Shown here piece after piece: positions 1-27,919 of a DNA stretch of 64,000 nucleotides. A program made the position numbers and the translations under genes. The notes under the pieces are model-generated. The model saw only the letters and a program-made list of their open reading frames with translations, did no database searches and had not been told where the DNA came from. Position 1 is the first letter of the stretch; the number at the start of each line of letters is the position of its first letter. This DNA is from Marsupella aquatica (lineage: Eukaryota; Plantae; Marchantiophyta), in the NCBI GenBank assembly GCA_973895155.1, contig OZ316897.1, positions 7,306,470-7,370,469 on the forward strand, read 5' to 3'.

Positions 1-724
1 GTAGGCAGCTTTTAAATGCAGTAGGCATATGTTTGTTGTCATGTGCAGTAGGCACAGGGTTTCTATGTGTAGTAGGCAACCTGGGGAAAATATCTCCTCT
101 GGAATTTGTGAAATTAATTGGTGGGAGTAACCATCATTAACATTTTCAATAAGTGTTTTTGTAGGTGCCTTAGATCATTTTTTTAATTTTTTTTTTGGCA
201 TGGCATGAAATGTTCTTGTGAATGTTAATGCAAATCAACATTGTCTTAGTTGGCTTTTAATAACTCTGAAATCAATATTGCATGGCAATGTTTCCTTTGT
301 AAAGAAAGGTGCTTTTTGCTAAGCTCGTATTTTGCTAAAAACAAATAAATGGAATTCGGGGTTGGTTTAGTGTTTAGGTTGTTTGAAGTGTATTTCCCTG
401 GTTAAGTGCACATTTTTCTTTGTAAACACAAATCTCTTTGATGGGTTTTTCAATTAAGGAGGGTTTGCACTTAGCGGTATATTCTCGACGTTTTCTCGAC
501 GTTTCAGCGTTTTTGTTGCAAGATTTGACTTTGCTGCGTGCGTTCCCTTCGTGCTCTTACCCTCTTTTCTCCGAGCTTCTATTGGTTCGTGCTCCCAATG
601 GTCAACTCGTAAGCTCATAACACCAATGCCCCTACCCCTGGTCGTGGATTGTTCCATCTTGTCCATGCATACTGCCAATCTCACGAGAACTGTTGTTTAC
701 CGAAACTGGCATTCTGTGTCCTTT

Positions 725-1280
725 TGTGCTATAGATGCCGTAACTTTGGGACTCCCATTGGTCATCGCTATCCTCCTTACTTTCCTCATCCTTGTGTTCG
801 CCTTTGATAACGAGGTCACCATTTTCTATGAACATTTTGACCTCATTCTTTGTGAGGCCTGGGAGGTCAATTTGCATGCGGTAGGAGTCATCCATTTCTT
901 TAAAATCCCACGGTGGTCTAGAAGAGTTCAGGAATGGTGACGCCACTTATGCAGGTGCCATAACGGTTCATCGAAAAACTTGATCCATTGTGTCGATCAT
1001 TGATAGGAGACTCCGGTTGGGGAAGAAGAAATCAAAGGCACAAAAAATGCCTAAGGGAGAGAACTTTCCGCGGCGCGACAGAGTGTCCGAGTCCCCTCTT
1101 CTCTTCTCCACTTTGTTTCCTCGTACTCGAGCGACATCTCCTGAGCAACCGAGGCCTTTATCCGCGGCTTACCGTAATGTAGTTGCATGACACAATTCAC
1201 CGCATTCCTTGCATTGCTATCTTTCAACGCAGCAGACCTCCGGACAATTGTAGGAGTTTCCAGTGGCTTCGCACTCAATT
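725..1280 (-). pseudogene. Captured, 3'-truncated organellar (plastid-type) small heat-shock protein fragment (HSP20 / alpha-crystallin)
   Basis: Transit-peptide-like N-terminus, Met-rich region (FSPLG..FPNRSLLSMIDTMDQVF) and ACD start (RPPWDFKEMDDSYRMQIDLPGLTKNEVKMFIENGDLVIKGEH..W..QSYGIYST). Stops/frameshifts are present and the domain is cut after YST. Confidence 0.85.
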
Positions 1281-2170
1281 CAATGTGCTTGCATAGTTTT
1301 CTTGGTCACAGTTTTCGGTAAGAAGAATGAGAAATCAATCCAATTAACTTCATCAACTCCAGGGACTCACAAACAGATTGGTAGTACCGGTGGAGAAAGA
1401 GCAAGAGAACGTAGTGAAACGGACTGGACCAGGACTACTGACGCATGTGTGAACTAATGTGGCACAGGCCAGTTCAGAATGCAAAGTAGGACTACGATGA
1501 AAATTCATTCACGGATAACAATGAAAGAATCACTGTGTGACTTTGGGAACTAAGACCCTAAGCGGGGACAGCATTGCCTTTCCCGCAGTCCTCATTGCAT
1601 GGCAGGAATGAAGAGACACAGCAGGAATTCCGCAGGGACCATGATATCTTCGTAATCCTTGCCACTGTGCAGAATTAACCTAGGAATTTGATAACTTCCG
1701 AGGCAATAGGTCGCTTCAAAACTGAAATATCGACGAGGCATCATCGCAATTCTGCACTTAAAGTTGACAGAGATGCCAAGATTGAGGGAATCCATTGCTC
1801 AAAAAATTTGTTAAAAATGAGAAGAAGACATCCAATAGCAACCATGAAACTTAGGACGAGCGGGATCCCAACGTGCATAGCCCAAGCCAACAACAAACGA
1901 CGCGGACGCCATTTGCTCACAATACATTCCGCTTTCCCTTCACACAATTGGCCGCATTCAAGCTAACATCAATGCCATCTTCGTCCACGTTCCGCCACAA
2001 TCCAGAGTGCAAAGCGAGCTGCAGCGCTTCAAGCAGCTCTCGCAAAAAAACCAAAAAAAAACTTTGGCACATTCAAATCACGTCTTCAGGGCTCTCCCTC
2101 CTTTCTTTGTCTTAGATTGAATCAGTCATGGCCTAAAAATTCAGCCAGTCTTAGGCTCGTGCTGATAACG

Positions 2171-2313
2171 TGTTGTGGGATAAATGAGACAAAGAGTTGG
2201 TTCCATCTTTACTCTTGGTAGAATATGTACATGTGGCTACGGCCTAAGTAGTTAGGGTAGTTACATAGGTAGTTATCCCAAAGGTAGACTTAACTCAAGT
2301 ATGAGTTACAACA
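2171..2313 (-). repeat. 5' LTR (143 bp) of the non-autonomous element
   Basis: TGTTGT..ACAACA termini; near-identical to 15182-15324 and 18700-18842 in inverted orientation. Confidence 0.93.
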
Positions 2314-2670
2314 AGAATCTTTTTTTCTTCATTTTTTTTTCTTTTTTGCATCGCAACTTGGCGGCCTCTCTGAAATGAGGTGGCAGCTGATATCAGGTAC
2401 GCTAATGAAAGTGCCTGATAACTGATGAGATTACTTATCTCCACATAATTGAATTCTTAGAGACTTACACTAGCCCATAATTCTACATTGGATTGGAATG
2501 AAATGTTAGATAGCCTCATAAGTTCCTTCAATAGTTTTTAATATATTTAATGTAGTCTTTTTGATTCCAACATGAATTTGACTTGTAAGATTGAATGATG
2601 CTCAGCCTTAAATGACCCGCTTTGCCTGTGTTTACTCTCATTATATGTATTTCTCTCCTCTGGTCCTTCA

Positions 2671-2978
2671 TGTGGGGAGAAATCAGATCAGGAAAAACAC
2701 TTCAAACATACACGTGCTCAATAGTTATGTGGTTCGCCTCAAGGTTGGCTACGTCCACGGGAATACAAAGCTTTATTAACGGTTATATGTCTACTCAAGC
2801 ATCACCATAGCTCTCATCTCTTGCTATATCACCGTGTTCTCTCTTGAGAACTCTCTTGTGTGTTCTCACATCACATAGAAGTTGAAGAGATAAGGACCAA
2901 TCTCTTCAACTAGGGTTTACTCTAACCCTAGTTAACATACTAACCATAGTTCAACCCAAGACTGAGTTACCCTCTACA
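2671..2978 (-). repeat. 3' LTR of the host copia element
   Basis: Starts TGTAGAGGG just after PPT CAAGGGGGAG and contains the copia-type GTGGACGTAGCC..GAACCAC motif. The CA end at 2671 is tentative because no partner LTR is available. Confidence 0.6.
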
Positions 2979-3179
2979 AACTCCCCCTTGATTCACGTCT
3001 TGGGAGGGTTCATAACATTGTCTTTTCCTTACAAATTCCTCCACGGGAAGTTCAAGACAGTAGGGCCAAAAGACCCTCCCCCTAATGCAAGGGTTAACTA
3101 GAACTAAGCTGTAGCCAATAAGCAATCGGATGGAGTACTCATATAGAGACATTTTCTTGGTTAACTCTATATTTACAAT

Positions 3180-3589
3180 ATTTGTAAATAATTACAATGC
3201 CTTGAAAAACTATTGGAGTCTAATACTTTGGTAAAAGCATCCACTGGATTAAGCTTTCCATCAATCTTGACAAGCTCAAATTCATCATCCAAAAATGCCT
3301 GTCAGACGGGCTGTCGGATAAAATGATAGCGGACATTAATGTGCTCTACCTTGCCATCCATCACCTGATTCTTGGCGGTGTAAATTGCACTTTGATTGTC
3401 ATAATGAAGATTCACACAATCTTGTGATAAGCCCATCTTCGTGAGAAGCTTTTTCAACCAAATGGTCTCTGATGCTGCTTCTGCTGCCGCTACATACTCG
3501 GCATCCATAGTAGACTTTGAAACACACTTTTGGAGAGTAGATTTCCAATTAATGCATCCACCAGCAAGTGGAAATACATATCTAGTTGT
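3180..3589 (-). pseudogene. Copia RNase H (host element)
   Basis: YVFPLAGGCINWKSTLQKCVSKSTMDAEYVAA..DNQSAI..HINVRYHFIR; continues the RT frame interrupted at 7466. Confidence 0.9.
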
Positions 3590-3699
3590 TGTGAGAATAT
3601 GAATGGAATGAACATGTGTATAGTCGGGAATAGGAGTACATATAGTGGGACCAGGGTGACCGGCTGGTCCGGTCGTCCGGTCAAAGGTAGAGTCTAACA
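3590..3699 (-). repeat. 3' LTR (110 bp)
   Basis: Identical to 7356-7465; TG..CA termini; PPT adjacent. Confidence 0.95.
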
Positions 3700-4010
3700 C
3701 TCCCTTTTGGATATATAGTGACAACTATATAGACAACATAGACTATACCTATTATATCATGTTCATAGGAAATACATGATATAAGTACAATCGAGGTAGA
3801 CTGCCTTGTTAAAAAACCTTTATCAACTCTAGCTTAGTAAAAACTCTACCAGTGTAGCAGAGAAAAATATGAGTGCTAAAGGAAAAAGAGTGCAGCCTAA
3901 CAGTCCTCGTCGTAATAAATGTCAATGTTAAGTAAAGTTAGATGCTATAGTAAATCTAGTTTTAACATTTGTCTCATCAGTAGGTCGTCAACAGCATATC
4001 ATCAGCATCA

Positions 4011-5712
4011 TCAAGTATCATGTGGAGCAGCAACTTCCATAGTCATCATGCGTCGCACGCTCCGTAGTCCAATCGCCTGGCAGTGTCGGTGATGAACTGA
4101 TGGTGGTAGTGATTTGGTGAAGAGATCCGCACAGTTGTCTGCACTTGAAATCTGCAAAATGTTGATCTCTTTTCCATGTAACTCGTGGGTGTAGAAAAAC
4201 TTTGGAGCTATATGCTTCACGCGATCGCCTTTGATGAATCCTTTCGTGATCTACTGTATACATGCTGCGTTATCTTCAAAAATGTTAGTAGGCTTCGTTA
4301 GTGGTGGTAGGCCGCATTTGGTGTTGATGTGGTTTATAAATAATCGTAACCAAACGGCTTCACGACTAGCCTCATGTAGAGCTAAAATTTCTGAGTGATT
4401 CGATGAGGTTGATGTTAGGGTCTGTTTCACGCTTTTCCAAGAAAAAGTGGTACCCCCAATAGTAAAAACATATCCGGTTTGAGATTTTGCGGTGTCCGTG
4501 TCGGAAAGATATCCGGCATCCGCGTATCCTATGAGTTCGTGGTTTGCACCGAATGGGTAAAATAACCCAGTATCGGTGGTGCCACGCAGATATCTAAATA
4601 CGTGCTTAACTCCGTTCCAGTGTCTGGCTGTGGGAGTTGCACTATGTCTGGCTAGTAAGTTAACTGCAAATGCAATGTCTGGCCTAGTCTGATTTGCTAG
4701 GTACATTAATGCTCCTATCGCAGAAAGATATGGAGTTTCTGGTCCTAATATGGGTTCATGTTCTTCGCGCTTGCGAAAAACATCAGTGGTGTTTTCTAAT
4801 GAACGTACAACCATTGGTGACGTCAATGGGTGTGCTAGGTTCATATTGAACTGTTTTAGGATCTTTTCAGTTTGTGTGGTCTGATGGAGCATCTTGCCAG
4901 TGGGTAGGATCTCTAGTTGTAAGCCTAAGCAAAAGTTTGTATGTCCAAGGTCTTTCATCTCAAATGTGGATTTAAGACTGGTAATAGTATCTTCTGTAAG
5001 TTGGGGTGTCCCGAATATATTTAAGTCATCAACATAAATAGAAATGATGACATATTCATCATCCACATGTTTAATAAATAAACATGGTGTAATGGCATCA
5101 TGGGAAAAACCCATGGCAATCATTTCATCAGTAAATCTTTGATACCATACTCTGCCACTTTGTTTCAGGCCATATAATGCCTTCAACACGCGGATAGCTA
5201 GTCCGCGGCGAGTATTCCGTACGGTTGACACAGCGGTGTCGTTATTATGAGTTACATGTGTAGATGACACATGAGGTGTAACTTGAGATAATTGTGTTAT
5301 AATCTTATGTAAATATGGAATATGCGATTTAGCGCCTTGAGCTAAAGCTCGGCGTCGTTGCTCCAACTCAGGAGGTGATCGCATGTATAGACAAGTGTCT
5401 AAAGTGCCATATAGATATGCAGTTGCAACATCTAGTTGTCGCATCTGTAGTTGGTGGAAAATGGCAAATCCGATAAGATATCGGAATGTTGTGCTATCCA
5501 TAACCGATGAGTAGGTTTCATCGTAATGAATTCCCGGTTGTTGTGTAAATCCTTTCCCTACCAGACGTGCTTTATAGCGTACAACTTGGTCTTTATCATT
5601 TCTTTTGCGGACAAATGTCCACTTGTAGCCAATTAGGTGTATGTCTTGCGGTGTTGGCTCGACTGGGCCAAAAGTGTGTCTGCTTAGTAGGGAATCTAAT
5701 TCTCCATTGATA
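4011..5712 (-). pseudogene. Bianca-type reverse transcriptase-RNase H, 5'-truncated, one internal stop
   Basis: RYKARLV, LYGLKQSGR, YVDDLNIFGT, YADAGYLSD and KHIAPKFFYTHEL (the KH.xPKFF and DDLN forms are typical of Bianca). ORFs 4251..5744 and 4011..4220 are in frame across one TAG. Confidence 0.92.
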
Positions 5713-7355
5713 GTTTTTTTTTTTTTTTGAATGTATAACTGCAAGGTTTCTTTTGTATTATCTTTTTCCTTTGTTAAGCTGTGCAGTAATGAGGTTTTTC
5801 AGTTTGTGCAGTTATTAGTGGTTATTTACTCATGACCTGGTTAAGTGCACATTTGGCTTTGTAAAGTTGAGTTCCTTTGTTACGAAATGCACTTATGGAG
5901 GTTTTGTGGTTATTGGTCGTGCACTTAGCGGTTTTCAATCGGACTCGACGTTTTGTCGATGAAATGTAGTGCAATTCTCCCCTCTTGGTGATCCCATTGC
6001 TGGTGTTCCTTTGGTGCCTCTTAAAATCTCGTCTTGCTTCAATTAGAGTTCTGACTTGTTACTCTTGTTTCGCTCCCTTCCAAGGTTCGCGTGTCTGCAC
6101 TGGGTCCTTGATATACCTCTGCATCGATTTTGCTTATCATTCCCGATTCTCTGTTTTCACGCCATCGCCATCGTCATCTGTTCGCACTTTGAATTCTGGT
6201 CCTGAAAAGTCAGGCTTCGCGTCTGTGCTCGGCTGTCTTCCTTCTCCATATTCGTGCATCGACTCTGGTCGCACTTAGCTATAAAACTATCCTGCAAGTC
6301 TCCGGACTCATCCGTCATTCCTAGTGTTACGCTGTGACCTGCAGATGCTATGTCGGCGTCGAGACTGCCATGTTGGGCCGATGGATCGGGACGAGGCAGT
6401 GGTTCTCTTATGATTTCTGATGATGTAACATAATTTCAATTGGACCTTCGTAAGCTTCCTTCGCGCTCATGCTTTCTCCTTTCGTGACTTGCGAGGGTCA
6501 CGGACCATCGGGATCGCTCCTTTCCTTTCGATTTTCCTTGTGTCCTTATCAGGATTCGAGGCTCCAATGTTGATCCTGTTGCTCTTCTTTTGATCTCTTC
6601 CTTTTCTGCTATATTGTCCTTACGAGTTCAAGTCTCAATGTCCCTGTGGCATTTCTTTGAAATTTCGGTGCTCCCTGTTTCTTCCGTTTTCGGCTTCACT
6701 CGTAATTCCTCTTGCTTCGCCTTCTGGTCCTGATCACTTCACCTCTCGATTCAGGCATCATCGATCCATCCCTATCCACTCTCCTTCAATTTTTGGAAGA
6801 TTATATGGCCTCGTCTCCTCTATTTTCGAAAGTACTTATGGTATCCTCATTGTACTTTCTTGCTGCGCCTGTGATTGACGGACCTTATCACCTCCGATCT
6901 CCGTAAGCCTTTGAGAGTTTCCTCCGATCTCTGTAAGCTTTTCAAAGTTTCTTTGCTCCTTTCCGATCTCGAGTTCGCTAAATGATACTGAGGCCGGCTC
7001 TCGCTGATTGGGGCTCAATTCTCAATTTTCAAAATGACTCTGCTCGATCTGCTTCTCTTGATCGATCGCTCCAATCCTTTTTCCAATCTCTTATCGCAGT
7101 CGTGAGGATCTCGTATGCTGCTTCTTTCCGATCTCTCTCGGTTCTCCTCCAATGAGTCCGGATCGATGTCCTTATGAATTCTAGTCTCTCACTACGCTTC
7201 CGATATTGTTTAAGTGTCGAGGCCTTATCATTATTTAATGAGTCCTCGCTCCCTTTTTCATGCAATCTCCATAACCCTTCAAAAGTTTCTTAGCCTCCGT
7301 CTCTTTTCTTCTTCTTTTTCTTGGCTCCGCTGGCTGAGACCTCGTGCTGATAATG

Positions 7356-7465
7356 TGTGAGAATATGAATGGAATGAACATGTGTATAGTCGGGAATAGG
7401 AGTACATATAGTGGGACCAGGGTGACCGGCTGGTCCGGTCGTCCGGTCAAAGGTAGAGTCTAACA
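7356..7465 (-). repeat. 5' LTR (110 bp)
   Basis: Identical to 3590-3699; PBS immediately downstream on the minus strand. Confidence 0.95.
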
Positions 7466-10414
7466 GTTGTCAATCTCTTCTTATCTAGATCACCTACGTA
7501 GTCTGCATCCACATAACCTTGAAGCACTTTCATATTGTTTGAACTTGCATCAAATAATAAACCCTTCTTAGTGGAACCTTTGCTGTAGCGCAAAATTCAT
7601 GTCACTGCTTCCCAATGAACTTTTTTTGGATTTGCCACGTATCTACTTACCTTGCTAATGGAATAAGCTATGTCTGGTTGGGTGCATACCATGAGATACA
7701 TTAAACTACTCACAACATTTTCATAAGGAACTTTGGACATCAAACTTTTTTTTGTTGCATCCGATGGACAAAATGCTGCAAAAATATTAAAATGCCTTGC
7801 CAAAGGAACACTCACAGCCTTAGCATGTGCCATGTTTAGTTTTGAGAGCACCTTCTCTACATATCTTGTTTGCGTCAGCCAAAGTTTGGCTTTGTCTACA
7901 TCCCTAACAATCTCCATGCCTAGGATCCTCTTGGTTGTGCCCAAGTCCATCTTAAACTCAAAACTGAGTTGGGCCTTAAGCTTATCAACTTCGCCCCTAT
8001 CCTTTGTTGCAATGAACATGTCATCCACATAAAGTACAAGGATGACAAACTTAAAACCTGTGTTGTTCACACGCCTGATGTAAAACACATGGATCGTACA
8101 CGCTTTGCACAAATCCAAGCAATTTCAAAAATTCATCAAAACGTGTGTTCCACTACCTTGGGCTCTGCTTTAATCCATACGAGGATTTTAGCAATCTGCA
8201 TACCAAATTTTCCTTTCCCTTTTGCATAAAACCCTCTGGTTGCCTCATGTAAATCACCTCGTCCAACGATCCATATAAGAATGTCGTGACAACATCCATT
8301 TGATCTAAAACCAGATCAAATAAAACTACAAGAGCACATAGCAGACGTATTGTTGAATACTTTGCTACGGGTGAAAAAACCTCATTGTAGTCTATACCTT
8401 TCTATTGAGTAAAACCCTTGGCTACCAACCGAGCCTTAAATATCTTCTCAGCATCCTTTGCGGGTCCATCTTTCTTTCTATACACCCACTTGTTGTCAAC
8501 ATCCTGCTCGTCACTAGGTAGACTTGTGAGTTTCCAAGTCTTGTTATCATGAAGTGATTTTATTTCCATGCGCATCGCCGCCTGCCATTGTTGCTTCTCC
8601 ATAGAAGCTAGGACCTCTCAAAATGAGGATGAATCTCCATCTTCTATCACCAATGCATCAATAGATTCTTCATCCAAATCCACTTGATCAGAAGAAAGCC
8701 AAGTTCCATACCTTTCTCGGGCTTGATGTTTGCGAGTTCCTCTTCGCATTGAAGACTCTGGCTGATCTGATTGTAGTGTGCTTTGCCTTATAGTGGTATC
8801 ATCATATTCTTCATCTAACACATCCTTTCCCCTTAAATCCTCTAGAGGAGGAGATTGCTCTTTGTTAGTAGTAGGGAATTGATCTATCTCCCCCTCCTTC
8901 AATGATTTTTCTTCATTGAAGGATACATCCCAACTAGCAAGTAACTTGCAATCAACTGGATCCCACAATCGATAACCTTTAACTTCACGTTGATAACCAA
9001 GAAAAATGCATTTTTGGGCTCTAGGATCTAGCTTAGTCCTATTGTTGCTAGGAACATGTGCATATGCTTCACAGCCAAAAACCCTAAGTTTTGAATAATC
9101 AGCAGGTTGATTGTGCCATAGCTCAAAGGGGGTTTTATATGTAATTGCCCGACTAGGAGAGAGATTTACTAGATAAGCATAAATGTTGAAAGCTTCCGCC
9201 CAAAAGATTTGTGACAATTTAGAGTGGCTCAACATGCTCCTTGCTTGCTCCAACAATGTGCGGTTGAGTCACTCAGCAACACCATTTTGCTCAAGAGTGT
9301 ACATAGTTGTGAGATAGTGAGTAATTCCCTTATTTGCACAATACGTGTTGAACTCGCCAGAGATGTATTCACCACCATTATCTGATCATAGATATCTCAC
9401 ATTCTTTGCAGTCTATGTCTCAACTTGAGCTACCCATTATTTGAAGATGGAAAGCACTTCAAACTTATGGGCAATGAAGTAAATCCAAACAAACCTTGGA
9501 TAATCATCGATAAATGATACATAGTATTGTTTGCCTGAATGCGAGAAAACCGGAGCATGACCCCACACATCGAAATAAATATACTCAAGTATAACTTTAG
9601 AATGATAAATGGCAGTTGGAAATGGAGTTCTTGTTTTCTTGCCAATAATGCAATGATCACAAACAACTCAACTTGCACACTTGCAATCCTGGTAGGAGAT
9701 GTCACTTGTGTAAGATTTCCAAACTTTTTTCACTCATGTGACCAAGCCGAGCATGCCATAAATTGATTTTCTCCTCTTGAGATGTGACCAAATTGACTTT
9801 GGCAAGAAGGGTGGTGCCTTCCAGGACATAAAAGTTTCTTTTTTTCTTGCCAATAAGAACTTCATTTGATCCCTACGTGACTGTTAACACCCCATCAGTT
9901 GCACTCCATTGATAACCCTTCGCATCCATGTAGCCAAGAGAAATCAAATTTTTACACATTTCTAGAATGTGTCTGACATTTGATAGAGTATAGTACTTGC
10001 CACCGGGTAGTTGAATCTTTACATATCCAAACCCTAAAACTTTGCAAGAATGATTATTTCCCATCAAAACAGATCCGTTGATAGGAGTCTAGGATGATAA
10101 AATTTCACGCATATAACACATGTGATACGAGCAAGCCGAATCCAAGATCCATTGACAATCCTCAACTTGAGAAGCGGTACACAATGCAAATCCTTCACTA
10201 TCCTCTTCTCGAACAACTACTTGGGCTGAAGAACCAGCAACTTCCTTGAATGTGTCTTTGACGCGACAATCCTTCTTCATGTGACCCACTTTGTCATACT
10301 TCCAACACTTTATCTCACAAGTAGACTTGGATGGTGATTTAGATCGAGATCTAGATCTAGATCTAAACCTCCTCCTACCAAAAGATCGGTCCTGGAACCT
10401 TTCTTGCTCCATGG
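7466..10414 (-). pseudogene. Copia gag C-terminus, protease, integrase and RT (host element), multiply disrupted
   Basis: Degenerate zinc knuckle (CWKYDKVGHMKKDC), WILDSACSYHM, LRVFGCEAYAHVP..KLDPRAQKCIFLGY, FKARLVAKGFTQ, LYVDDM. Confidence 0.92.
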
Positions 10415-13400
10415 TGTCATGCCATCGGCCTAGTCCTTTGGCTGATCTACGTCTAAGACGGACACTTCCCTTGTTAGTATTTGGGTTCAGGCAAGGAGGG
10501 ACGTGCGGAGTGCATATAATTCTCCTAGACTAGCGCTAAGTGTGCATACATTTACTTACAAGCACGCCTAGGTATACTTTATGTTCCATCGCCGAAACGT
10601 ACCTTAGTCAACACGGGGTCGATCCCGGCTTACGGAGCCTTTGTGTTACCGCCTTTGATCCGGATCCATTAGTACAAGTGCTCAACCCCGACTCGCAATC
10701 CCGTACCCGTAACCTGCACCCCGTGCATGCTTGGCATAACGTGTTCGGCCTGGCATTGATACTTGCATACGAGACTCATACATGCATTCATACATAAACA
10801 TAAATCTTGATTTAGACGAAGGAATTGAGGGGAAAGAATTTCATTCATATATGATCATACACTTACGATTGGGTGACCCAACACCTCGTGAATGAACGGG
10901 CCCAAGGCCAAGGGGTATACACTACAACGGAGCCCGGCTCCGCACTTGCTCAGCGAGCTTAGTCATATACCCTCCCCTTGGCACTCCGGCACTTCATCGA
11001 GTTTGGGACTCCCCGCGCGTACCGCGAATGGCCAACTTCTGAGTCTAAAATCCCCCCCGGTGCCTCTACCGGGGGGCTGCTAAATACTAAGGGCTGAGGA
11101 CCAGCCTGGCCTCGTGCCCAAATCTACGCTAATATATCCTTGCTAAGCTGGTTACGGCTTGTTCTATTAGTCTAACCTATTCTACACAGGCTGGCTAGTG
11201 TGTTAGCACCGCTATCTTCTGGCAAGCACTTGTCCTAACAGCCTGTTGTAGCTACTCCTAGTTCTATTCTAATCCTAACTCTCCGCTAATGCCTGGTGCG
11301 CTTGCCAGAGCCGTTCGAGTGGGAGCGGCCATCCCGCTGCCTACGGAGTCTATCGTTGTCCATCTTGAGGAGTTGGACTTGGTCTAGCAGAGATTTGTTC
11401 TCTCGCTTCGCCGCATCCATCTCCTCAACTGCCTCCTGGCATGCCTCTTCTAGTTGCTGGGCGTTGCTCGTCAACTTGTCCACCATCTGGGTCTGCTTCT
11501 CGGCTTCGGTTTGAAGGCCGCGCTACTTCAGCCTATAGGGCGGCAATCTCCGTAGTGTCACACTGGGCCCGTTCTTTGGCCTCCTCCAGGTCTTTCTGCC
11601 AGATGACAATTTGATTCTTCAAACTGTCAACCTGGGTCCGGAGCCGTGCAATCTTGGCCTCCTTCCCAGCTTTGGCCTGTTCGGCTAAGGCGGTAAGGGC
11701 GTGCGTATTTGTTAACAACTCATCGGCGGCTGCAACCTTGGGTCGTAGTTGCAGAATTGAAGCTTAGCCTTCTGAGTCTCAATTTTTCCCTTTAGGTACA
11801 CAGACTCAACCCGGTACTGTTCTATCCTCTGAAGGGCCTCCAACTGGGCCCGACCTACCTTTACTGCGGTAACCAACTCCTGGTTGAAGAAGTAGGCTAC
11901 CTTCCGGGCCATGAACTCCCCGGTATCCTGGGAAATCTGTTGGGAGAAATCTCCCAAAAGCCCGTTCAGAAATGTACCCGATACGAAGAGTTCTGGGTGG
12001 TCCAGGTTGTGCCCGTCCAAAGTTGGACAAGGGCAGATGTCAACCCTCGCGGGAGCCGGGGTAGTGACATCCAACCCTGGAGATGTAGTGTTGGAAGGGG
12101 CTGGAGTGTTCTCCTCCATCATCGTGCTATCCTCTAGAATAGCCACCGGTGGGTCTTCTGGACCCTCAGGCTGTGGCAAGGCCTCCACCGCCCTGACTTT
12201 TGCACTCAGCCCGGCCTGGTTGATTGCATCTAAGGTTGCAATCACTGCCTCATCCGGTACCTCCTCGGCCACGGCTACGGCTACTTGTGGAGGTGGGGTA
12301 GGTGAGGCCTGCGTGGCCGCCAGACTTTGGGCCTCGGGTTGAGGCCGTCTCTCCAAGGCCGGGAAGACCCACCTAGTCGGAACCAACTTAGTTACGTTGG
12401 CCCGGGGAAGGGTTCATCGATCGAACCGAGCATACCACTTGAGAATGATCTTGATGTGGCTCGCAAAATACCCCTTCCCGCCGATGTACAGCGCCTTCCT
12501 TTGTTGTTTCATCTCTTCATGGAACTTCTTAGCAAAGTATGATGCCCATTTCTTAGGCCAATAGTTCTCGACCTGGATAACTTGGGCAGCGGAGATCTTG
12601 CCCCGGGTTCCATCATGTGCAGGGCGTACCTCTGGAACTCCAGCCGCTCGGCTATCTCCGGGATGAGGCAGGTCCTCATCACAAACCCGTTGTCCACTGA
12701 CCCCTTGGAGGGAAAACTCGAGGATTGGTACTTGGCTCTTTTGCCCTCGGGAGCCCGTGATTCGACTTGTTGATCTCCCTCAGGTAGCCCGAAGATCATC
12801 TTGAGCCGCTCCTCTATGAGGGACATATTTCTCCCCCGTAGCCAAGTCTCCTGACGGACGTCATCATAATTCTTGATGAACTCCGTCATGCCCTCCCCGT
12901 AGTACCTACAGGTGTTCCAGGGGAGAGAGGCGAGGTGCTCAAACCCCTGAGTCTTCAAGCACACTGCATGTTTGGGGTGGAGGATGTTCTTATGCACGTT
13001 TTCCCCCATGCGGTGCATTGTTACCTTGGCCGCGGCTACCATGGCCATGATTAACTCGGATACAACTGCGGGTTCTTTCCTCTTCTTTCCCCGAGACCGG
13101 CTCCCGTGATGGCTCTGAGAGGGTGACATTTCCCCATCCTCTCGATCGGGTATGGGTAGTGCCATCGCTGTTAGTATTGGGGCCGGGGCGGCTACGGTCA
13201 CCGTGTTGTCCATCGAAGCCGCTACTCGGGTACGGGCCTGGGGAGGGGCAATGTAGTGCCGGCTCCCTGGGTGCGCGCTCCTCTGGGCTGCCTAGGCAGG
13301 GGTGGGGTAACCTCATCGTCGTCGCTGAGGTCCATAGCGTTGACGATGGATCGCACTTATATGGGCGGGGCGACCGGCGGTGGGGACCGGCTAGGCTAAG

Positions 13401-14400
13401 GCAGAGCCTGAGCCTGAGCCTGTGTTGGTGCAGGTACGGGCACGGGCACGGGCTCGGCTGGGCCGGCACCAGTGGTTGATGGTCTGGTTCCCATGAAGTT
13501 TTGCAGGTGCTGGTAGAGGTTTTTCGAAGCAAGTGTAGGCGGTCTTGTCGACAGGGTAGTGTTGAACTCGCTATTGATGATATCCTAGACCTGAGCGGGG
13601 ATGTGGTCAAAGTGGTGCCGCTGTAAGTCGATCGTGCCCAGGATAGTGAAGACTGCGTCCAAAAGCCAAAGCAATGCCTCCCAAAAGCCGATGTATTTGC
13701 CCCCATCGAAGAAGTACCCTGATATTTCTTCGGGTTGGTAAAGCTTGCTTTGGGACGGGTAATCAAAGTTAAGGAGGTAGTGGTGGCAGCGTGCTAGGCG
13801 GATGGCTCTCTGGTACTCACGTTTGATTTTGTATCGACGCGGGTTAGCGTATTTTAATGAGTTGGCCAAGTGTCCCCCAATAGACAGGAATTGCATCCAG
13901 AATCATATGGCAAAACTGGAAAGGATCGTGTGCGACATTCAGAGGCGATAGAAGGCGACTAAGGATGGGCGAGAGAACTTGGATCAAAGCTTGCGCATGT
14001 ACTGAAGAACTGGTGCACTACAAAGGATCGGCCCCCTTTTATACCCTGAGAGCTTGTTCGTCGCCCAACGCCTCCTCGTCGCTTATAGGCCAAGCCTTTC
14101 ATGCTTGCAGTGTGCCGGCCACTCCGCCAGTCCGGGTCAGCGCGTGTCAGTAGCCGCATTCCAGAGTTCGTTATACGGACCCAAGGGGGGTCCATTGCAC
14201 GCTCGCAACCCGGGCGTGCGAATGGCGACTCGCCGCCAGCCCGAACACAAATGCCCCTTATTGACTAATGATTTCCTACTCATAATGGCTACCTAAATAC
14301 TATTGTTACGCCAATAATGATGGCCTAAGATACCCCTAACGCGCGTGCTAGGCATGGTTAGGCCGAATCACTCATTACCCGCCATACCGGCGGCGTCACA
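10415..14400. mobile_element. About 4-kb solo-LTR-like insertion containing protein-coding ORFs
   Basis: TGTCATGCC..GGCGTCACA termini; 5-bp TSD CATGG (10410-10414, 14401-14405) splitting the copia gag. No internal direct repeats, no gag/pol. Confidence 0.82.
11286..13896 (-). pseudogene. Disrupted accessory ORF set inside the solo-LTR-like element (Pro-rich ORF; Athila-ORF1/Transposase_32-like domain; coiled-coil tail)
   Basis: TATA-like TATAAAAGGG near 14040 on the minus strand. Motif EFIKNYD..T.LRGRNMSLIEERLKMIFGLPEG has a protein-level homolog at 37000-37370. Confidence 0.6.
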
Positions 14401-15082
14401 CATGGGAAGTGGGTTAAACCTTTTATTTTCATGAAATGGCTCCCTTGCCTTGCCTCTTTCTACCAACAGTGCTGTTGATGATGAGGTTGAGGTAGGATGA
14501 GCTGAAGAAACCAGCTTAGACTACATGTCATCGGTCAACAGGGCACTCACCACATCATTGTAGGATATAGTTATTTTATCACGGAATAGAAGAACTCAAG
14601 ACAAAGACTGGTACGAAGGTGGTAGTGAGCTCAAGAGTTGTAAGGCTTTCTTTTCTTCGCTCAAATGCTCCCCCAAATTCTCAAGGTCAACCACAAGATC
14701 ATTAAACTGATCGATATGATCTTGAATCTTGACTCCATCAGCCATTTTGAATTGCATGAGCTTCAGGCTTGCATACATTCAATTTGACATCTCTTTCTTG
14801 TAGCAATTGTTGCGTAATGCTCGAAACAAGTCTATCACCGTTTGTGTTGATTTTTCCTCAAGCTGCTTCTTCACATTGTTTTTCAGGTACATGCCAACAA
14901 TGCTTACCGCTTGATCCCGAAGATCATGCCAATCATCATCTTCCATCTCCTTGGGTTGAGATCTTAGTACCTTGCCTAGGCCCATCGCCCTAAGTGCTGT
15001 TACATTCCCACATTGTATAGTCCATTCAACCATTAAATTTTTCCACCTCAAACCTTTGACCTCCAATCCTAGTAGTCGTCAT
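14401..15082 (-). pseudogene. Copia gag N-terminus (host element)
   Basis: FEVEKFNG start; LMQFKMADGVKIQDHIDQFNDLVVDL..KALQLLSSLPPSY (UBN2-type gag). Confidence 0.88.
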
Positions 15083-15324
15083 TGCTGGAATGCCAAATAT
15101 AGTGTGGATTCGCCTTCCGCAAGAAATAAACATCAAACGCTCAGATGTGGGATGTGAAAATAAGGCCAAAAATGAAAGTTGTGTTGTAACTCATACCTGA
15201 GTTAAGTCTACCTTTGGGATAACTACCTATGTAACTACCCTAACTACTTAGGCCGTAGCCACATGTACATATCCTACCAAGAGTAAAGATGGAACCAACT
15301 CTTTGTCTCATTAATCCCACAACA

Positions 15325-15339
15325 CGTTATCAGCACGAG
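15325..15339 (+). promoter_or_regulatory. Primer-binding site complementary to the anticodon arm of tRNA-Ile(IAU) (half-tRNA priming)
   Basis: CGTTATCAGCACGA is the complement of TCGTGCT(I)ATAACG; the same PBS occurs at 2156-2170 and 7341-7355. Confidence 0.8.
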
Positions 15340-15904
15340 CCTGAGACTGGCTGAACTTTTTTAGGCCATGACTGATTCACTCTAAGACGAAGAAAGAAGG
15401 GAAAGACGTGATTCGAATGTGCCAAAGTTTTTTTTGCGAGAGCTGCTTGAAGCGCTGCACGAGCAACTTTTCTTTGGGAGAAAGGCCAAGGAAGAATTGA
15501 TCCCGGCTATGGTGAATTGAATATCAAGGCGCCATCTTATTCTTAAACTACATCTTTGATTGATAAGATTTCTAGCGAGCACCAGCTCACTGACGGCTGG
15601 TCGTGAGCGCACAACAGATTGGAGTACGACAACCTACTCTGTTTCCTGTGTTTGCTTCCAGTTCTACTCGAGTCTGCCGCTGGAGGCATTCAAAATGGAC
15701 GAAGCAGTAACAGGATGTTGTGATTTCTTTCCCGACACTACGCTTTCCCAACACTATGCTGACAGAAAAGCAGCATTCCCCTCCAGGGTGAAAAGGATAA
15801 GAAGAGCAAGACGACAGCAATAGAGAGAAGACGATCAAAAAGCAGAAAGAAGAATTCAATTAGGACATCGCGACCTCATAGGGACAGGCCTCGCTCGATA
15901 GCCA

Positions 15905-16021
15905 ATGATAGCCGCACGGGATGCAGCTATCTTGGAGCGAAATTCGGCTATCACGGAGAGAATAGCTGCATATGAGGAGAGAGACACTGCCCTTCTGCTA
16001 CGTGACGTAGCTTACGCTTAA
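15905..16021 (+). pseudogene. BPC: Captured fragment of a class II BBR/BPC (GAGA-binding) alanine-zipper coiled coil
   Basis: MIAARDAAILERNSAITERIAAYEERDTALLLRDVAYA matches the ERDAAI.ERN.AI.E..AA..ERD.A.LQRD pattern of BPC4/6. Confidence 0.75.
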
Positions 16022-16120
16022 GAATGGTTCAAATTATAGATACTTGAGCAGTAATGGCCCAAATCGTACTAGTTGTGATTTTGAAGCTGTATGCTAGAGA
16101 AAGATTGACATGTAATTTAC

Positions 16121-16690
16121 CTCAAGACCAAGCTGCGTGATTAGAGCCTGGACATGGTCAGCTTTCTCGGAGTGCGAAAGCTTCGTGGGGAGGCGCACCT
16201 CAGCAGCGAACATGAAGGTCTCAGTAACTGTTAGAAAGGGGAAGAGAAGGTCTTCCTGCATCACGTACGCGCTGTTGAGCTTGATATAGCTGCCGGTCAT
16301 TTGCTGCCCATCCAGCCGCACTGTCTCGCCCAGACTCCGTTGCTCAATGCGGCCGGCCAGAGCGTCCAGGAAGGTGGACTTGCCAGCACCGCTCGGTCCC
16401 ATGATTCCCGTCAATTGGCCTCTGATAGCCTTTCCCAAAATCCCTTGCAGAAGGTCGACGGGATAGGACTCCCATTTTCCGTCGATCTTCTCCTGCTTGA
16501 CGACAGTGTACGTGAGATCTTCGAACTCGAGGCCCAATTCAGCGGTAAATCTCGTCGGCTCTGCACCTTGAATGGCATCAGCATTTGGTACTCCAAAATT
16601 GAGTTCTTTGTAGCCGCTACGGGACGGCACCTTGTTGATGTCCTCCAGGACAGTTTTCAGCGTCTTCCTGCCATCCTGCCGATGATTCAT
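16121..16690 (-). pseudogene. STR: Captured exon 1 of a half-size ABCG transporter, STR (stunted arbuscule) clade, antisense to the element
   Basis: LEFEDLTYTVVKQEKIDGKW..LL..I.GKAIRG..GIMGPSGAGKSTFLDALAGRI..SY.K..SAYVMQEDLLFPFLTVTETFMFAAEVRLP..QLGLE. There are 190 open codons, then a GT donor at 16120; the rest of the gene is absent. Confidence 0.8.
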
Positions 16691-19600
16691 ATTTCAAAGT
16701 GCTCAATCGGATCCGAAGCAAAACAAAAAAAAAATGCTGCCAAGATGCTTCGATCCTGAAGACCTTCCAAAAATGCCTTACGGTGTCATTCCACAAATTG
16801 TCGAGTCTGAGATCAAATAGTTTGTGGCAACAACATCAGAGACTTAAATTAACAGGCGCAAAATGTTTTGGTTTCGGGGGCCAAGTGAGGCACACTGAGC
16901 GTTTGCCGAGATGATACGTGGTTATACTGACGCGTCTGCACGAGTTCCACATTTGAAGTATATAATACGGTTGTATTTTGTAAGTTCACGGAGATCCGCG
17001 TTTTGGAACGAGTCATCAGACCTCCTATTTCCAGTCCGTGAAGGCGACCTCATACGGAAGATTGATTCATAAGGAACACCCATACGCCTAATTACCAATT
17101 GAAAAAGATAGGAGGAGAGAAGACGCTACAGAAATCGAACGCAGATCGTGAGCAAGGCAGGCAGCATCACGAACATATAAAGATAGACAGTCCATGATCG
17201 AACGCGAAGGGAGAAACTGAAAACTTTGAAGGAAAGAATGCGAGACATAGGAGAGAAACAATAAGCACCGAAACCAAGGAGGATAAATCCAAGAACATTG
17301 AAGGAAGCACAAACCCGAAAAAGCAAAGAGAGAACCCTGAAGAACGATGAGGCGAGACCGAAACTGATCGAGCCAAAGAGAGAACGTGAGGAACGCCAGG
17401 AGAGAGAAGGACGTCCAATGCAGACGGAGATCGTGGTACAAGCTAAAGACGAGACGCTGGGCAAAGGAGGCAAACAAAGAGAAGCCATCAAACCAAAGGA
17501 AAGTCCTCCACCTTTTCTTCTAAGAAGACCATTTTACACTAAGGAATGGAGAACTAAAGAACAAAGAGACTTTCTCTTCAAAAGGAAAGAAAAACCAAAC
17601 AACAAAGCATGAAGTAAGGACATAAAGAAAGAAGCTAAAGTACAGAACCTACATGGCGACAAATGATGATTACTTCCACCAATTAATTTCATAAATTCAG
17701 GGGGAGATATTTTCCCAGGGGTGCCTACTACACATAAAAGCCCTGTGCCTACTGCACATGGAAGCAAATGGGTGACTACTACACAGCCAGCCAGAAAGGA
17801 AAAATATTTGACAAATTGAGGGGGAGACCTCAAGCAAGACTTGCAAGATGTGCCTACTGCACAAGTGCTTTTCACAACAATCAATATTCAAAAATGGAAC
17901 TACATTCCATGAGTTAGAAGCATATGGCCAAATTATGAAAAATGCATTAAATCACCAATATTGGATGACATGTCATGACGACTAAAATTGGAAATATCAA
18001 AGACCCCACATCATATCATAATAAGGTATCATATGATCATATGAAGTATGGTATCACATTACAAGGTACTATCAGGTGAGGTATGACTTGGTAAGGCACC
18101 ATGACAGATGGTACGCTATACCTTGATAGGAAATCCCTATGATATATGAGACCTAGGATTGGACACTCCAAACGATTCCAAGGCCAACGGATTTCAATCA
18201 ACCATATCATCTTCATTATGAACTAATACCTTGTTTTTTCCTTGCATGTAATCAATGACCATTGAGGAATCTTCATTGCCTGATCGGGAAGAGACGCAAG
18301 ACACAAAACAGCATCAACTTTGCTAACACCAACCAAGGAGGATCTTCAACAAGCCTATAGTGTTGACAAACACCTTAAGAGACTTTGTAAAAATTACACA
18401 TACACTATATGCTTAAACCCAATTATGTTACACCCATTGGGATGGTAATACTCTTTCCTCCCACAAAGAAAGTAGGGGAGGTTTTAATGAGGTTACATCC
18501 CCCACTTACACTTTACCATGCAACATGAATTATAAGACATCTATTAGGAGAAGTTTGACATTCATTTATAGTAGACTTGAGATGGCTACACCATTTATAA
18601 AATAGTCTAGACATAAACAAAACCTATTGTATACCACTGAGTATGCCCAAAGTAGACTCTTGATTGTAACATTTAAACCCCAATGTTACAAAGGGGGAGT
18701 GTTGTAACTCATACCTGAGTTAAGTCTACCTTTGGGATAACTACCTATGTAACTACCCTAACTACTTAGGCCGTAGCCACATGTACATATCCTACCAAGA
18801 GTAAAGATGGAACCAACTCTTTGTCTCATTAATCCCACAACAAGTTGGTGAATTTTGAAATTGATCACTCTTGTGTGTAGCACACAAGGTAACGCTCCAA
18901 ATTCTGAAAATGGTTTGTCAAATGGACTCTCAAGTGCCGAGAATTTTTACTCCGGTCGGAGGGGGGTAAAAGATGAAATAATTACCCCTCTAGGGAATCT
19001 ATTATGCCAAAGATTCTACTAGGATACTTTTTCAAAATTGAACGCACCAATACTTGCCTACCAACTCTCAAAACGGTGAAAAATCAAGGGAGAAACAAAT
19101 AGGTGAAAGTGACTTATATTAACTTATCCGCCATGTCGCGCCATAACCCGGGCCTTAAATCTGAGTTAGTTCATCGGCGCACGTACAACCACCAGTAAGG
19201 GTAAGGTTTTGGGCAAGGAGGTGTGTAGTGGCCCTAGCTAGTCCAAGTAGGACTATGTAGATATACGCACCGGTATAATATTACACGATCATTACTGATA
19301 TCATAGGTATGTTTGTTTTCCACCGTTGGAAGGCTCCCATAGCTAGTGACTCGAACTAACTCCCGGCTTGGGGACTTTCAAGCCATTGGCGTGACTTAGA
19401 ACTTTGCGACATGCTCTTTTTCGACAATCCCACCAGTAGTCCGCACCCTGTACGTCCCTTAAAATGGTGTCTTTGTCCAGGCACGGCATGCATACAACAC
19501 CACTTACTTGCAAGAGATCAGAGGAAAAAGACCGTTTTACTCAGATAAGAAGAACCAGTCTACATAGTTGACTCGACTTCTAAGGGATCAGCAGGCCTAA

Positions 19601-23889: not shown

Positions 23890-26800
23890 CTATTGCAAAT
23901 CATCAACCTCATCATATTCCATTTGCCCAGGTTCATCATATGTCTCTCTCAATGTTAAGGGGATGTAGTCAGTCCCTGCCCAAGTTGGAAATACAGTCTC
24001 ATGACTAGGATGCTCGAATGCAGCATGGTCATCCAAACTGAACTCTACTTTACTTCCATCCATCCGCCTGTTCCGTGCTTGGCTATGGCATACCACCCTC
24101 CAACCATGTGACTCCTCCACATCTGCAAAGAAAGCCTGTTCAACTTGGCTAGGGAAAACAAAAGGCTCAGACCATTCTGGTACTCTGGACCTAAAATTGG
24201 CCAACAAGAACCCATCATGATCACGCTTCATGGTGGCCCTTGGTCTCTGCCACTCTGATTTCACCCATGATCCCTTCATCAATATCACTGGGACACTTGT
24301 GTTACCATAATTCAACACCCAAATGTCGGTCAACTCCCCCACGTAACCCATCTTCATCCACCCCCTCTGTTCTTCAGAGTTTCTCTGCTCAAACACAGAA
24401 ATCAAACCACAATCATATGATACACAATGGTCACCCTGCTCATCCCTCACTCGATAATGATTTCCATAAGCTCTCATCCGTTTGTAGGTCAGAATAGACA
24501 ATCGTGGTGGCACAGATAGAAGATACAAATCCTTCTCCATATCTGGGTGATGTCTACTATGCTCTCGAATTGTCACCCGAATCCACTGCTCGAACTGTGG
24601 GAAGGGATCCTGCTGCCCAGAGTGTGCAGCTTTTTGCATATCATATTCCCTGCAATATGAGGTACAGGCATAGTTAGGTCTAAACAACACATGACAACCT
24701 AAGATCACCCTTGGAACAGACAAGAAGCATCACAACAAAGGCAAGTCAATTCAATCACTCACCTCCACCATGGTTGCATAGGCTCTGTGTTTGCCAGCAC
24801 ATATGAATGAGCCTTGTCTCGAATCGCAACAGGCAGCTGAACAGCACGTCCCACACCTTCAACAACCTCGCCACTCACTCCATCATCTTCACCAGATTTC
24901 CAAACTCTTGTCATAGCTTCACCAGACCCAGCCATGTACTCTGTTAGGAATCCCAACGTCTCATCCTTAATGTACCCCAATGCCATGGAAGCCTCTGGCC
25001 TGTAGTATGTTCTCACATGACCTTTCAACAACTTCATGTATCGCTCCATAGGGTACATCCATCTGGTACTGACTGGCCCATACTGCCCTAGCTCTTCTAC
25101 CACATGGATTAGGAGATGAGTCATAACATCAAAGAAAGCAGGGGGGAAGTATATCTCCAAGTCACAGAGGACATAAGCAGCATCCTGCTTCAACTGCTCC
25201 AATCCTTGGGGATCCCACACTTTCACACATATACGGCGAAATACATTGCACAGTCGAAGAATGACATTACGAACTGGTTTCTGCATGAGACCTCTGAGGC
25301 ATAGGGGCAGAATGTGCTGCATCAACACATGGTAGTCATGTGTTTTCATACTGCCAAGTTTATTCTTTGTAATATGCTTCTTGAAGGCACCAGCATAGCC
25401 AGAGGCACTTTCAGACAGCTCAATCTATACAAGAATGTCTTCCATTCATCCTGTGTGCACACATAGGGAGCTTGGAACTTGAGAAGTACATTGGGATTGC
25501 TTGCATGGGGCTTCAACCAAAGGTGAGGGCGAATCCCCTTCTGTTGCATATCAGCTCGAACTGCTCCTGTATCTTTCTCACCCGACAAGAACTTCAACAA
25601 GCTCTCACAAATATTTTTCTCAATGTGCATGACGTCCACATTGTGTTTGCTGGGCTTGAATTCCTGCACTCCACAAAGCAAAGAATTCAACAACAGAAAC
25701 ACTAATTAACCACAGAGGAGGATTGTAACCAACATCAATCCACCATTGCTCCAATCTAAAATTGCAATCATACAGGGGCTGGAGGCTAAGTACATTACCC
25801 TCCAGTACTCCAACTCCAAGTCCATCAAGGTCTGTCTTTTCACACCGTGTTTCACCACTGGATCCTCAGGTTCTCGATCAGTGGCACTTCTCTTGTCCCA
25901 ATCAGCCTTCCTGGCTGCCCACCTCAGGACTTGCTCTCTGGTGACCCTCTGTGGTGGGCCACGAAGCTCTGTTTTGTTGTTGAAGTGTGCAATTTGAGAC
26001 CGTGTGTGCCTGTAAGGATGATCAACAGGCAGATACCTTCTATGCCCCTGAAATTTCATACTGTGCAGGGCATGCGACCACTCACTTGTCACATTTTTCC
26101 CACATGGTGTGCACCCCACATAGCCCTTAATTTGTCACTCGTCCAGATATGATGCCATGGCCTAGGTAATCTGCTATATCCAGCAAACAAATTGCATGCA
26201 GTCTAAAGGGGCTGGGTCGAAGAAGCCCCTTCAGAACATCATGGGTTAACACCCCTTCTATCCACAAAGTCTTCCACTCTTCCACTGCTGGAGCCAACAT
26301 GATATCTATGAATTGCTCGGTCACAGAAGCTGGTCCAGGGATTAACAGCACCATCATGACAAAAAACCTCTTTGTAGTCATCCATGGGGGAAGGTTGTAA
26401 TTTAGCAGCGTAACCGGCCAACATGAATAACGGTTGTTTTTGTCTCCAAATGGGTTTACTCCATCCAGTGATAGACCAAATCGAAAGTTCCGCTTCTCTG
26501 CAGCAAACTGTGGCCACCTCTCATCAACAAATTTCCAATGGTTGGAATCTCCAATGTGACGCTGCAGGCCATCACTGCTCTTGTTATCAGGAGTCCATGT
26601 CATCAGCTTGGAAATGGCAGGGCATCTAAACAGACGTTGTAGTCTAGGAATGAGAGGAAAATGACGAAGAACCTTGGTAGGATGTGTACATTTCCCTACA
26701 TTCTTGTACCTGTGCTTACCACAATGAGGGCATGTCAATTTATCTGCATGCTCTTTGCGAAAGAGAACACACCCATCAGGGCATGCGTCAATAGACACAT

Positions 26801-27593
26801 AGTTCAGCCCAAGGTTAGACATCAATTTCCTAGCCTCGTACATATTTTTTGGAATTGAATTACCATCTGGTAACACATTTCGGCGCAGGAAGGTCAACAA
26901 CTCTGTCACAAATATATTGGGAACATTGTGATTGCCACAGATGTTCAACAACAACACGACAAAACCCAGCTTGGAGCAGTTCGACCCCTCGTAGATAGGA
27001 ATGCAAGCTTCTTTGATGTGTTTTGGGCCCCCAAACACCCACTCCCTCTCTGCTGCACCTTCCCCAATGTCAAAGTCAGGTTCAGCTTGGCCGTCGCCAA
27101 TGTGTGGCTGCGGTTCATTGTCCTCTTCTGATTCCACTGTGTCGTAAAAAGCATCAAGGTCTTCAAAAATCTCTTGAACCATTCTTGGGACATCCATCCC
27201 ACCGTCCTCAGTGACTGCCTCTGCCTCTCCATCTTGGTCATCCACGTTCTCATGTTGGACCCCAGGACCATCCTCTGCACAGTCTATGTCCTGCTCTACG
27301 TAGTCTTTACGCCTAGCTGTATTAGAATCCACAAAGTCAGCTCTCCACTCTTCATCAGAGGAGTCTTCTTCTGCTGGTACATTCCAAACCCTCCACCGAG
27401 GGTGCCTTTCATGCCGCAGCAGGTGAAAGTGCACAGTGTTCAAACTCAACGACTTGAATCCTTGGCACTGTGTGCATGGGCATCTCATCCTCCTACTCCT
27501 ACCTTGGGCGGCCCAGGCTTGTTCACGCATCCACAATTTAGAATCATGATGCCTAATCCTAAATGGGTTGTGAAGAGGCAACCTTGGAGCCAT
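23890..27593 (-). pseudogene. CACTA TnpD-like transposase (Transposase_21 + DUF4218 + DUF4216), introns and about 2 frameshifts
   Basis: IDACPDGCVLFR, LRHFPLIPRLQRLF, RFGLSLDGVNPF, SCWPV..YNLPPW, DVMHIEKNICE, KTHDYHVLMQ, FPPAFFDVMTHL, RWMYPMERYM, EPFVFPSQVEQAFF. Confidence 0.95.
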
Positions 27594-27919
27594 CACTATA
27601 CACACGCACTCAACACCCTGTCATTTTATTATGCAAGTGAAAAATACACTTCCTGTTAAGGATTTCACCCCCAACTGTACTTGCCAAAATACGTAACGTT
27701 CCAAAAAAACAAAAAAACAAAAAATATAGGTGCCTGAGTCATGTACCTATTCTCAAGTGAATGAGACAAAATTCCTAAATGTTTGAGGGTGTCAACTCCT
27801 CCGCTGTCCTCACATGTACTGCCTCTGCACGTACATCCATGACCATATCAGAGTCCAATCATGTATAGTCATAGACACAGGTGCCAGGTGCGAGACCGGT
27901 GTGAGATGTCCTCATCTTA

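Follow-up and report, generated by a model that had tools for sequence, protein, structure and literature searches.

The window analyzed here, a stretch of 64,000 nucleotides from the liverwort Marsupella aquatica (contig OZ316897.1, positions 7,306,470 to 7,370,469), contains a long terminal repeat (LTR) retrotransposon of 3661 bp on the plus strand at 15182-18842, called element A, and a related copy on the minus strand at 1-2313, called sister B, which is cut off by the start of the window. The two elements share their ends and differ in their interiors, in which pieces of host genes are embedded. They probably represent a small non-autonomous family of the Ty1/copia type, which has kept its cis-acting parts and carries a patchwork interior containing host gene pieces that were acquired separately. 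The parts of element A are listed below in their order along the window.

15177-15181, left copy of the target site duplication AGTTG, the same five bases being present at 18843-18847
15182-15324, plus strand, 5' LTR of 143 bp with TG...CA ends, 100% identical to 18700-18842
15325-15341, plus strand, primer binding site (PBS) CGTTATCAGCACGAGCC without a TGG start (half-tRNA type), identical in B at 2154-2170
15325-15459, plus strand, 135-nt leader common to both elements, with 93-100% identity to B 2170-2020; the likeness stops after GCTGCA
15460-15904, plus strand, internal segment S1, without a Pfam match or a match to B, apparently multi-copy
15905-16018, plus strand (sense), BPC2-type coding fragment of 114 nt from the coiled-coil part (residues about 17-54), assigned by amino acid and nucleotide identity
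16019-16120, minus strand, beginning of intron 1 (102 nt) from the captured ABCG gene, with GTAAAT after ...QLGLE
16121-16690, minus strand (antisense to the element), exon 1 of an ABCG half-transporter with start codon and Walker A motif; Pfam ABC_tran, E 1e-13; 195 homologues
16691-17039, minus strand, sequence upstream of the ABCG start codon, probably co-captured, with a tentative far end; no Pfam match, low depth in run X5
17040-17661, plus strand, internal segment S4, purine-rich (68%), without a Pfam match, its depth resembling that of S1
17662-18699, plus strand, non-coding 3' backbone, including the block shared with B, a 120-nt internal duplication and the polypurine tract
18690-18699, polypurine tract AAAGGGGGAG, directly before the 3' LTR
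18700-18842, plus strand, 3' LTR with 143/143 identity to the 5' LTR
18843-18847, right copy of the target site duplication AGTTG, read directly from the sequence

The LTRs of element A start with TGTTG and finish with CAACA, with AGTTG on both sides, and the window contains three occurrences of the LTR start pattern, compared to zero expected by chance. Direct LTRs with TG...CA ends, a target site duplication within the usual range of 4-6 bp, and a PBS and a polypurine tract at 15325-15341 and 18690-18699 are the features of an LTR retrotransposon, and the element must be young because its LTRs are identical. Seven public sequencing runs contain parts of the stretch, none of which is recorded as RNA, and the contigs of four of them were placed on 15100-18950. 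Element A sits within another high-copy repeat, as judged from the flanks at 15100-15181 and 18843-18950, which reach contig depths of thousands. Several runs contain contigs leading from flank to flank without element A, with 15175 joined to 18842. These contigs confirm the boundaries of the insertion, and since the flank itself is a repeat of high depth, they probably represent paralogous empty sites. The 3' backbone is the part of the element with the highest contig depth in all four runs. A side observation concerns the 120-nt duplication inside the shared 3' block (17686-17863): each unit opens with a sequence resembling a polypurine tract, ATTT.A.AAATT.AGGGGGAGA, and bears GTGCCTACT(A/G)CACA motifs, while the contigs of three runs vary in this region by a 40-nt unit.

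Sister B consists of the following recognizable parts.

17-138, minus strand, start of the shared 3' block, the remainder lying beyond the window
139-2019, minus strand, interior unrelated to that of A (no blastn match to A at word size 7) and without gag-pol
722-931, minus strand (sense to the element), fragment of a small heat-shock protein (sHSP) gene of about 210 nt, corresponding to residues 27-96 of a 137-aa sHSP; Pfam HSP20, E 2e-10
2020-2170, minus strand, PBS and leader matching element A
2171-2313, minus strand, 5' LTR with 97.9% identity to the LTR of A, differing at 3/143 positions

A comparison of both elements by blastn aligns A 15182-15435 with B 2313-2054 at 93% identity and A 15429-15459 with B 2050-2020 at 100% identity. 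The likeness then ends abruptly after GCTGCA (A 15459, B 2020) and resumes only at A 17662-17760, which matches B 138-40 with 89% identity. A repeat search lengthens this 3' block to 17662-17783 in A and 138-17 in B (122 nt, 84%), and the return of B to the 3' backbone can be traced over only about 120 nt, since B is cut by the edge of the window.

As to coding capacity, no Pfam match to gag, protease, integrase, reverse transcriptase or RNase H was obtained from the stop-free pieces of at least 45 aa in A or B, and a tblastn search against both elements with the copia proteins of the window returned nothing below E 0.02. Therefore, A and B are non-autonomous. Their PBS does not contain the TGG expected of priming by an entire tRNA and appears to fit the anticodon arm of plant tRNA-Ile(AAU), with a C opposite the inosine; tRNA genes were found neither in the window nor in the loci examined for comparison. 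A site similar to this PBS is present in a third element of the window, which carries a copia reverse transcriptase. Among Bianca elements, 92% have a PBS matching a half tRNA-Ile whose wobble base is edited, and 96% are flanked by 5-bp target duplications (Neumann et al., 2019; PMC6317226), a rule with which the 5-bp duplication of element A agrees. The description of A and B as LTR elements that are young, non-autonomous and equipped with a primer site of the Bianca type is supported by these data, and a Bianca element may copy them in trans.

Between leader and 3' backbone, element A is composed of at least four segments. The BPC piece encodes 38 residues with 82-89% amino acid identity to liverwort BPC2-type proteins, and its relatives with a full GAGA_bind domain, to which the identity is given as 87-89%, include two Calypogeia fissa proteins and MpBPC2. 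On the DNA level, it shows 86% identity to the C. fissa genes and 89% to a Logan contig, and both matches start and stop at the same bases. Because they share these ends while two liverwort BPC genes remain alignable with each other well past them, the piece is a sharply bounded scrap of 114 nt, in sense orientation. The sHSP piece of B shows 80% amino acid identity to a liverwort-like sHSP of 137 aa (P0121). The nearest gene matches come from leafy liverworts, and the parent genes of the BPC and sHSP pieces were met only in liverworts other than the host. The BPC, ABCG and sHSP pieces are too short or too broken for working proteins and are regarded as passengers, since none of them can encode one.

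The largest piece of host DNA in element A derives from an ABCG gene, whose exon runs from the start codon at 16690 to 16121. All named proteins among its 195 homologues are members of the ABCG family; the matches of permitted length are fragments named ABCG1/16/17/18 or without a name, and the protein atlas yielded only generic ABC clusters. The original prediction, made from the sequence alone, had called this piece STR, a label which is tentative. No near-identical protein was found in the homologue search, the best match reaching 66%, and an exact-protein look-up of the 198-aa open reading frame (ORF) returned no record. Protein similarity to the homologues stops at ...QLGLE, the donor sequence GTAAAT is found next to it, and a genomic ORF of a related species reads into the same letters past this point, so the 102 nt from 16120 to 16019 represent intron sequence. 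A transduced spliced mRNA would be expected in sense orientation and free of introns. Because the ABCG piece is antisense, retains the start of an intron and probably includes sequence from upstream of the start codon, it cannot have been copied from a spliced, mature mRNA. The BPC and sHSP pieces are in sense orientation and too short for assessing intron loss.

Run X5 contains a contig of 815 nt with single depth, which is 95% identical to element A over 16018-16684 and leaves its sequence exactly at 16018. Such a contig would be expected either from the ABCG parent locus or from a copy with a different junction, and X5 may represent another species. Coverage by this run extends over about 16018-16900 at the low depth of the exon, and thus into the region upstream of the start codon (16691 onward). 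In runs X1 and X3, the only form of the ABCG region (16019-16900) encountered was that of element A, and an intact ABCG parent gene may be missing from some accessions or species of the host.

Further information on the family comes from the depth of the contigs, which does not equal copy number and stems from runs whose library types are not recorded. In X1 and X3, the depth amounts to about 10000-19000 in the LTR, about 2600-6600 in the leader, S1 and the BPC piece, about 700-1000 in the ABCG piece as the lowest value, about 3000-5000 in S4 and 5000-38000 in the 3' backbone. The depth of S1 is 3-6 times that of the ABCG piece, and position 15986 within the BPC piece is covered by eight distinct X1 contigs. 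If the runs represent DNA, the simplest reading of these values is that S1 with the BPC piece and S4 are common to several copies, that the ABCG piece is present at about single-copy level, and that the 3' backbone is common to other families. A contig of 525 nt from X3 crosses the junction between the BPC and ABCG pieces with two differences, and a contig from X6 (15374-15502) crosses the junction between leader and S1 at 15459. Since independent contigs cross both junctions, the mosaic is not an assembly error. Metagenome scans for further copies with the LTR-PBS junction and with the LTR core gave 0 matches each.

The window is almost entirely derived from transposons. The third element mentioned above (3590-7465, minus strand) is likewise young and non-autonomous, with a target site duplication ACAAC at 7466-7470 and 3585-3589, identical LTRs of 110 bp, a similar half-tRNA PBS at 7339-7358 and a long purine-rich leader. 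In its interior, a poly(A) run near 5720-5735 precedes the rear part of a copia reverse transcriptase/RNase H (ORF 4251-5744, Pfam RVT_2), and the element is nested in an older copia element, of which pieces of reverse transcriptase, integrase and RNase H are located at 7597-9256 and 3302-3589. A block of 82 nt with 71% identity and an 18/18 match at one end is common to the interior of B (397-478) and the third element (5836-5917), where it is located just upstream of the poly(A) run. A conserved hairpin considered for this block was dropped, as its folding was no better than that of shuffled sequences (z -0.8 and -1.4). In addition, the regions 23890-27605 and 40793-51209 contain a CACTA-type transposase (Transposase_21, DUF4216) on the minus strand and two Ty3/gypsy pol regions at 42804-45725 (plus strand) and 47733-51209 (minus strand).

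The explanation favored here assumes a family which keeps nothing but its cis-acting parts, namely the 143-bp LTRs, the half-tRNA PBS, a leader with a length of about 135 nt and about 1 kb of non-coding 3' sequence that includes the polypurine tract, and which must be copied by a protein-coding relative. In place of gag-pol, its members carry patchwork DNA including short host-gene passengers, which would have arrived on separate occasions, followed by amplification of the respective lineages. The arrangement of S1 plus BPC looks common to several copies, whereas the ABCG piece seems to have been added last and may be limited to element A. That this piece is a further, lineage-specific addition is likely, and since at least two unrelated interiors exist in addition, host DNA has been acquired more than once. 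The likely mechanism would be a template switch to unspliced or antisense RNA packaged alongside the element, or filling-in on the DNA level. The sense scraps of BPC and sHSP could derive from template switching onto co-packaged mRNA, and the ABCG piece may come from an unspliced antisense or read-through transcript present in the particle, from a DNA-level event before transposition, or from filler DNA introduced after insertion. The order of the acquisitions and the mechanism are both inferred. Several points weigh against this explanation: the fit of the PBS to tRNA-Ile is presumed, no autonomous element with matching LTRs lies in the window, the sole candidate for a parental locus of the BPC, ABCG or sHSP piece is the ABCG contig of X5, and the structure of the family is deduced from contig depth.

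An alternative origin of the ABCG piece, which is doubtful but accounts for several of its properties, would be its arrival after integration of element A, either as filler of a repaired break or by gene conversion, replacing the remainder of a longer BPC passenger. The piece shows the lowest contig depth of the element, is genomic in kind with its intron and upstream sequence, is oriented antisense and begins exactly at the cut of the BPC piece, and no contig links 16018 straight to about 17040. However, the identical LTRs leave little time since the insertion, and no repair scars such as small duplications are seen at 16018/16019.

It appears rather unlikely that A and B are recombinants of two older families which exchanged the LTR-leader part and the 3' ends by homologous template switching, without any fresh capture being implied. 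Chimeric LTR elements produced by template switching are documented for Veju and BARE-2 (PMC13317346), the interior of B shares the 18/18-nt motif of the 82-nt block with the third element, and the 3' backbone shows a higher depth than the LTR, and hence would be common to other families. Yet the entry of the host gene pieces is left unexplained by such an exchange, and the LTRs of A and B differ at just 3/143 positions.

The original prediction went beyond the family favored here and proposed a Pack-LTR system, in which the reverse transcriptase would repeatedly switch at a fixed hot spot after the leader to host RNAs and back, mobilized in trans by Bianca. Most of the observations on which it was built were borne out: the identical LTRs (143/143) and perfect duplication AGTTG of element A, the ends shared with B, from the LTR with three differences, the PBS and the leader to the parting after GCTGCA and the common 3' block in blastn, the BPC cargo of 114 nt with 86-89% identity to liverwort BPC2-type genes, the antisense cargo, an ABCG nucleotide-binding domain (Pfam ABC_tran, E 1e-13), and the sHSP cargo of B (Pfam HSP20, E 2e-10; 80% identity to the 137-aa protein). 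Of the interpretation itself, young non-autonomous elements with different interiors, host pieces and two unrelated genes in A are retained, whereas the slot, the shuffling and the capture of RNA are not. In favor of a hot spot, the similarity of A and B breaks off abruptly at a single position and is restored in the common 3' block, one element harbors pieces of two unrelated genes, and the depth in X5 drops from 29 in the leader to 4.5 beyond it. Two copies cannot reveal a fixed slot, however, because any pair of related sequences with different interiors diverges at a single position and converges again at a single position; with independent deletions or replacements in A and B, the boundary observed would simply be the nearer of two breakpoints, and a common slot needs at least three different cargos with identical boundaries, while only two interiors were read here. 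The loose ends of contigs, among the few displayed, are at 15542, 15773 and 17679 rather than at 15459 or 17662, which suggests that other variants break at different places. The depth in X1 and X3 hardly changes across 15459, so most leader-bearing copies in these best-holding runs appear to continue like A through the BPC piece; the prospect that most copies share one interior, named in advance as speaking against repeated shuffling, may thus have come true in part, for the 5' half of the cargo as judged from contig depth. Capture from spliced mRNA is contradicted by the antisense orientation and intron start of the ABCG piece, and a mobilization by Bianca is deduced from the PBS, no autonomous partner with these LTRs having been found. 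The Pack-LTR system is therefore considered improbable, and we would regard it as quite improbable that the end of the leader is a true hot spot of template switching at which members of the family would exchange their cargo for host RNA time and again, unspliced and antisense transcripts included. If it were, an early-diverging land plant would harbor a functioning counterpart of Pack-MULEs that operates on the RNA level and is able to spread antisense starts of host genes such as the ABCG 5' end. Finally, a mosaic of mis-joined repeats is hardly conceivable, even in a repeat-rich region where none of the listed contigs spans the whole element, given the X3 and X6 contigs across two of its junctions and a perfect LTR pair with target site duplication, which would not come from mis-assembly.

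The host gene pieces found in the maize LTR element Bs1 are intronless, in sense orientation and fused into a translated chimeric ORF. Element A differs from Bs1 by its largest piece being antisense and intron-bearing, by the lack of any hybrid ORF seen, by its liverwort host and by its Bianca-type PBS. The elements are alike in that both contain interiors homologous to host genes other than transposons (a BPC2-type exon piece and ABCG exon 1 in A, as well as the sHSP piece in B), and Bs1 is a low-copy non-autonomous LTR element with partial fragments of several unrelated host genes, three in its case (PMC13317346). Knowledge of gene fragments in LTR elements goes back to Bs1 (Jin and Bennetzen, 1994; Elrouby and Bureau, 2001, 2010; PMC13317346), and rice and sorghum have been surveyed for such elements as well. 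Bs1-like captures and chimeric elements are generally attributed to template switching onto co-packaged mRNA (PMC13317346). In maize, 425 LTR elements with gene fragments were recorded (Baucom et al., 2009; PMC2774510), which represent at least 189 captures and fall mostly into families lacking coding domains. A and B resemble the elements of maize, rice and sorghum in carrying gene fragments within intact LTR elements of mostly domain-less families with many independent captures. In contrast to the maize set, in which 0/425 elements contain fragments of more than one nuclear gene (PMC2774510), element A harbors pieces of two unrelated nuclear genes.

Other known systems share the architecture of constant ends and variable interiors. 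In the long form of the Veju TRIM and in BARE-2, switches among RNAs packaged together placed a different interior between the same ends (Sabot and Schulman, 2007, via PMC13317346), although these elements acquired unknown sequence or sequence of other transposons rather than identifiable host exons. Pack-MULE and Pack-TYPE elements are likewise non-autonomous and combine conserved ends with variable host fragments, often as mosaics. Unlike A and B, they are cut-and-paste elements with terminal inverted repeats, which capture on the DNA level and reach hundreds or thousands of cargos per genome, compared to only two or three interiors in evidence for the family of A and B. TRIM and LARD elements resemble A in their lack of coding capacity and dependence on a helper, and TRIMs also in their short LTRs, but with 3661 bp element A exceeds the limit of about 1-1.5 kb for a whole TRIM, while element and LTRs are too short for a LARD. 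Hence, the gene capture seen in A and B is of a known kind, and no new class of mobile element is established.

To our knowledge, gene-fragment capture by LTR elements has hardly been described in the liverwort lineage, for which the family of A and B provides a clear young example in a non-autonomous LTR element. Unusual for element A is the presence of two unrelated gene pieces, the larger of which is antisense and contains intron sequence, which argues against the spliced-mRNA route; the Bianca-type PBS and the liverwort host are less common features as well. Transcripts of the antisense ABCG 5' end, should the LTR drive any, could enter small-RNA silencing directed at the parent gene.

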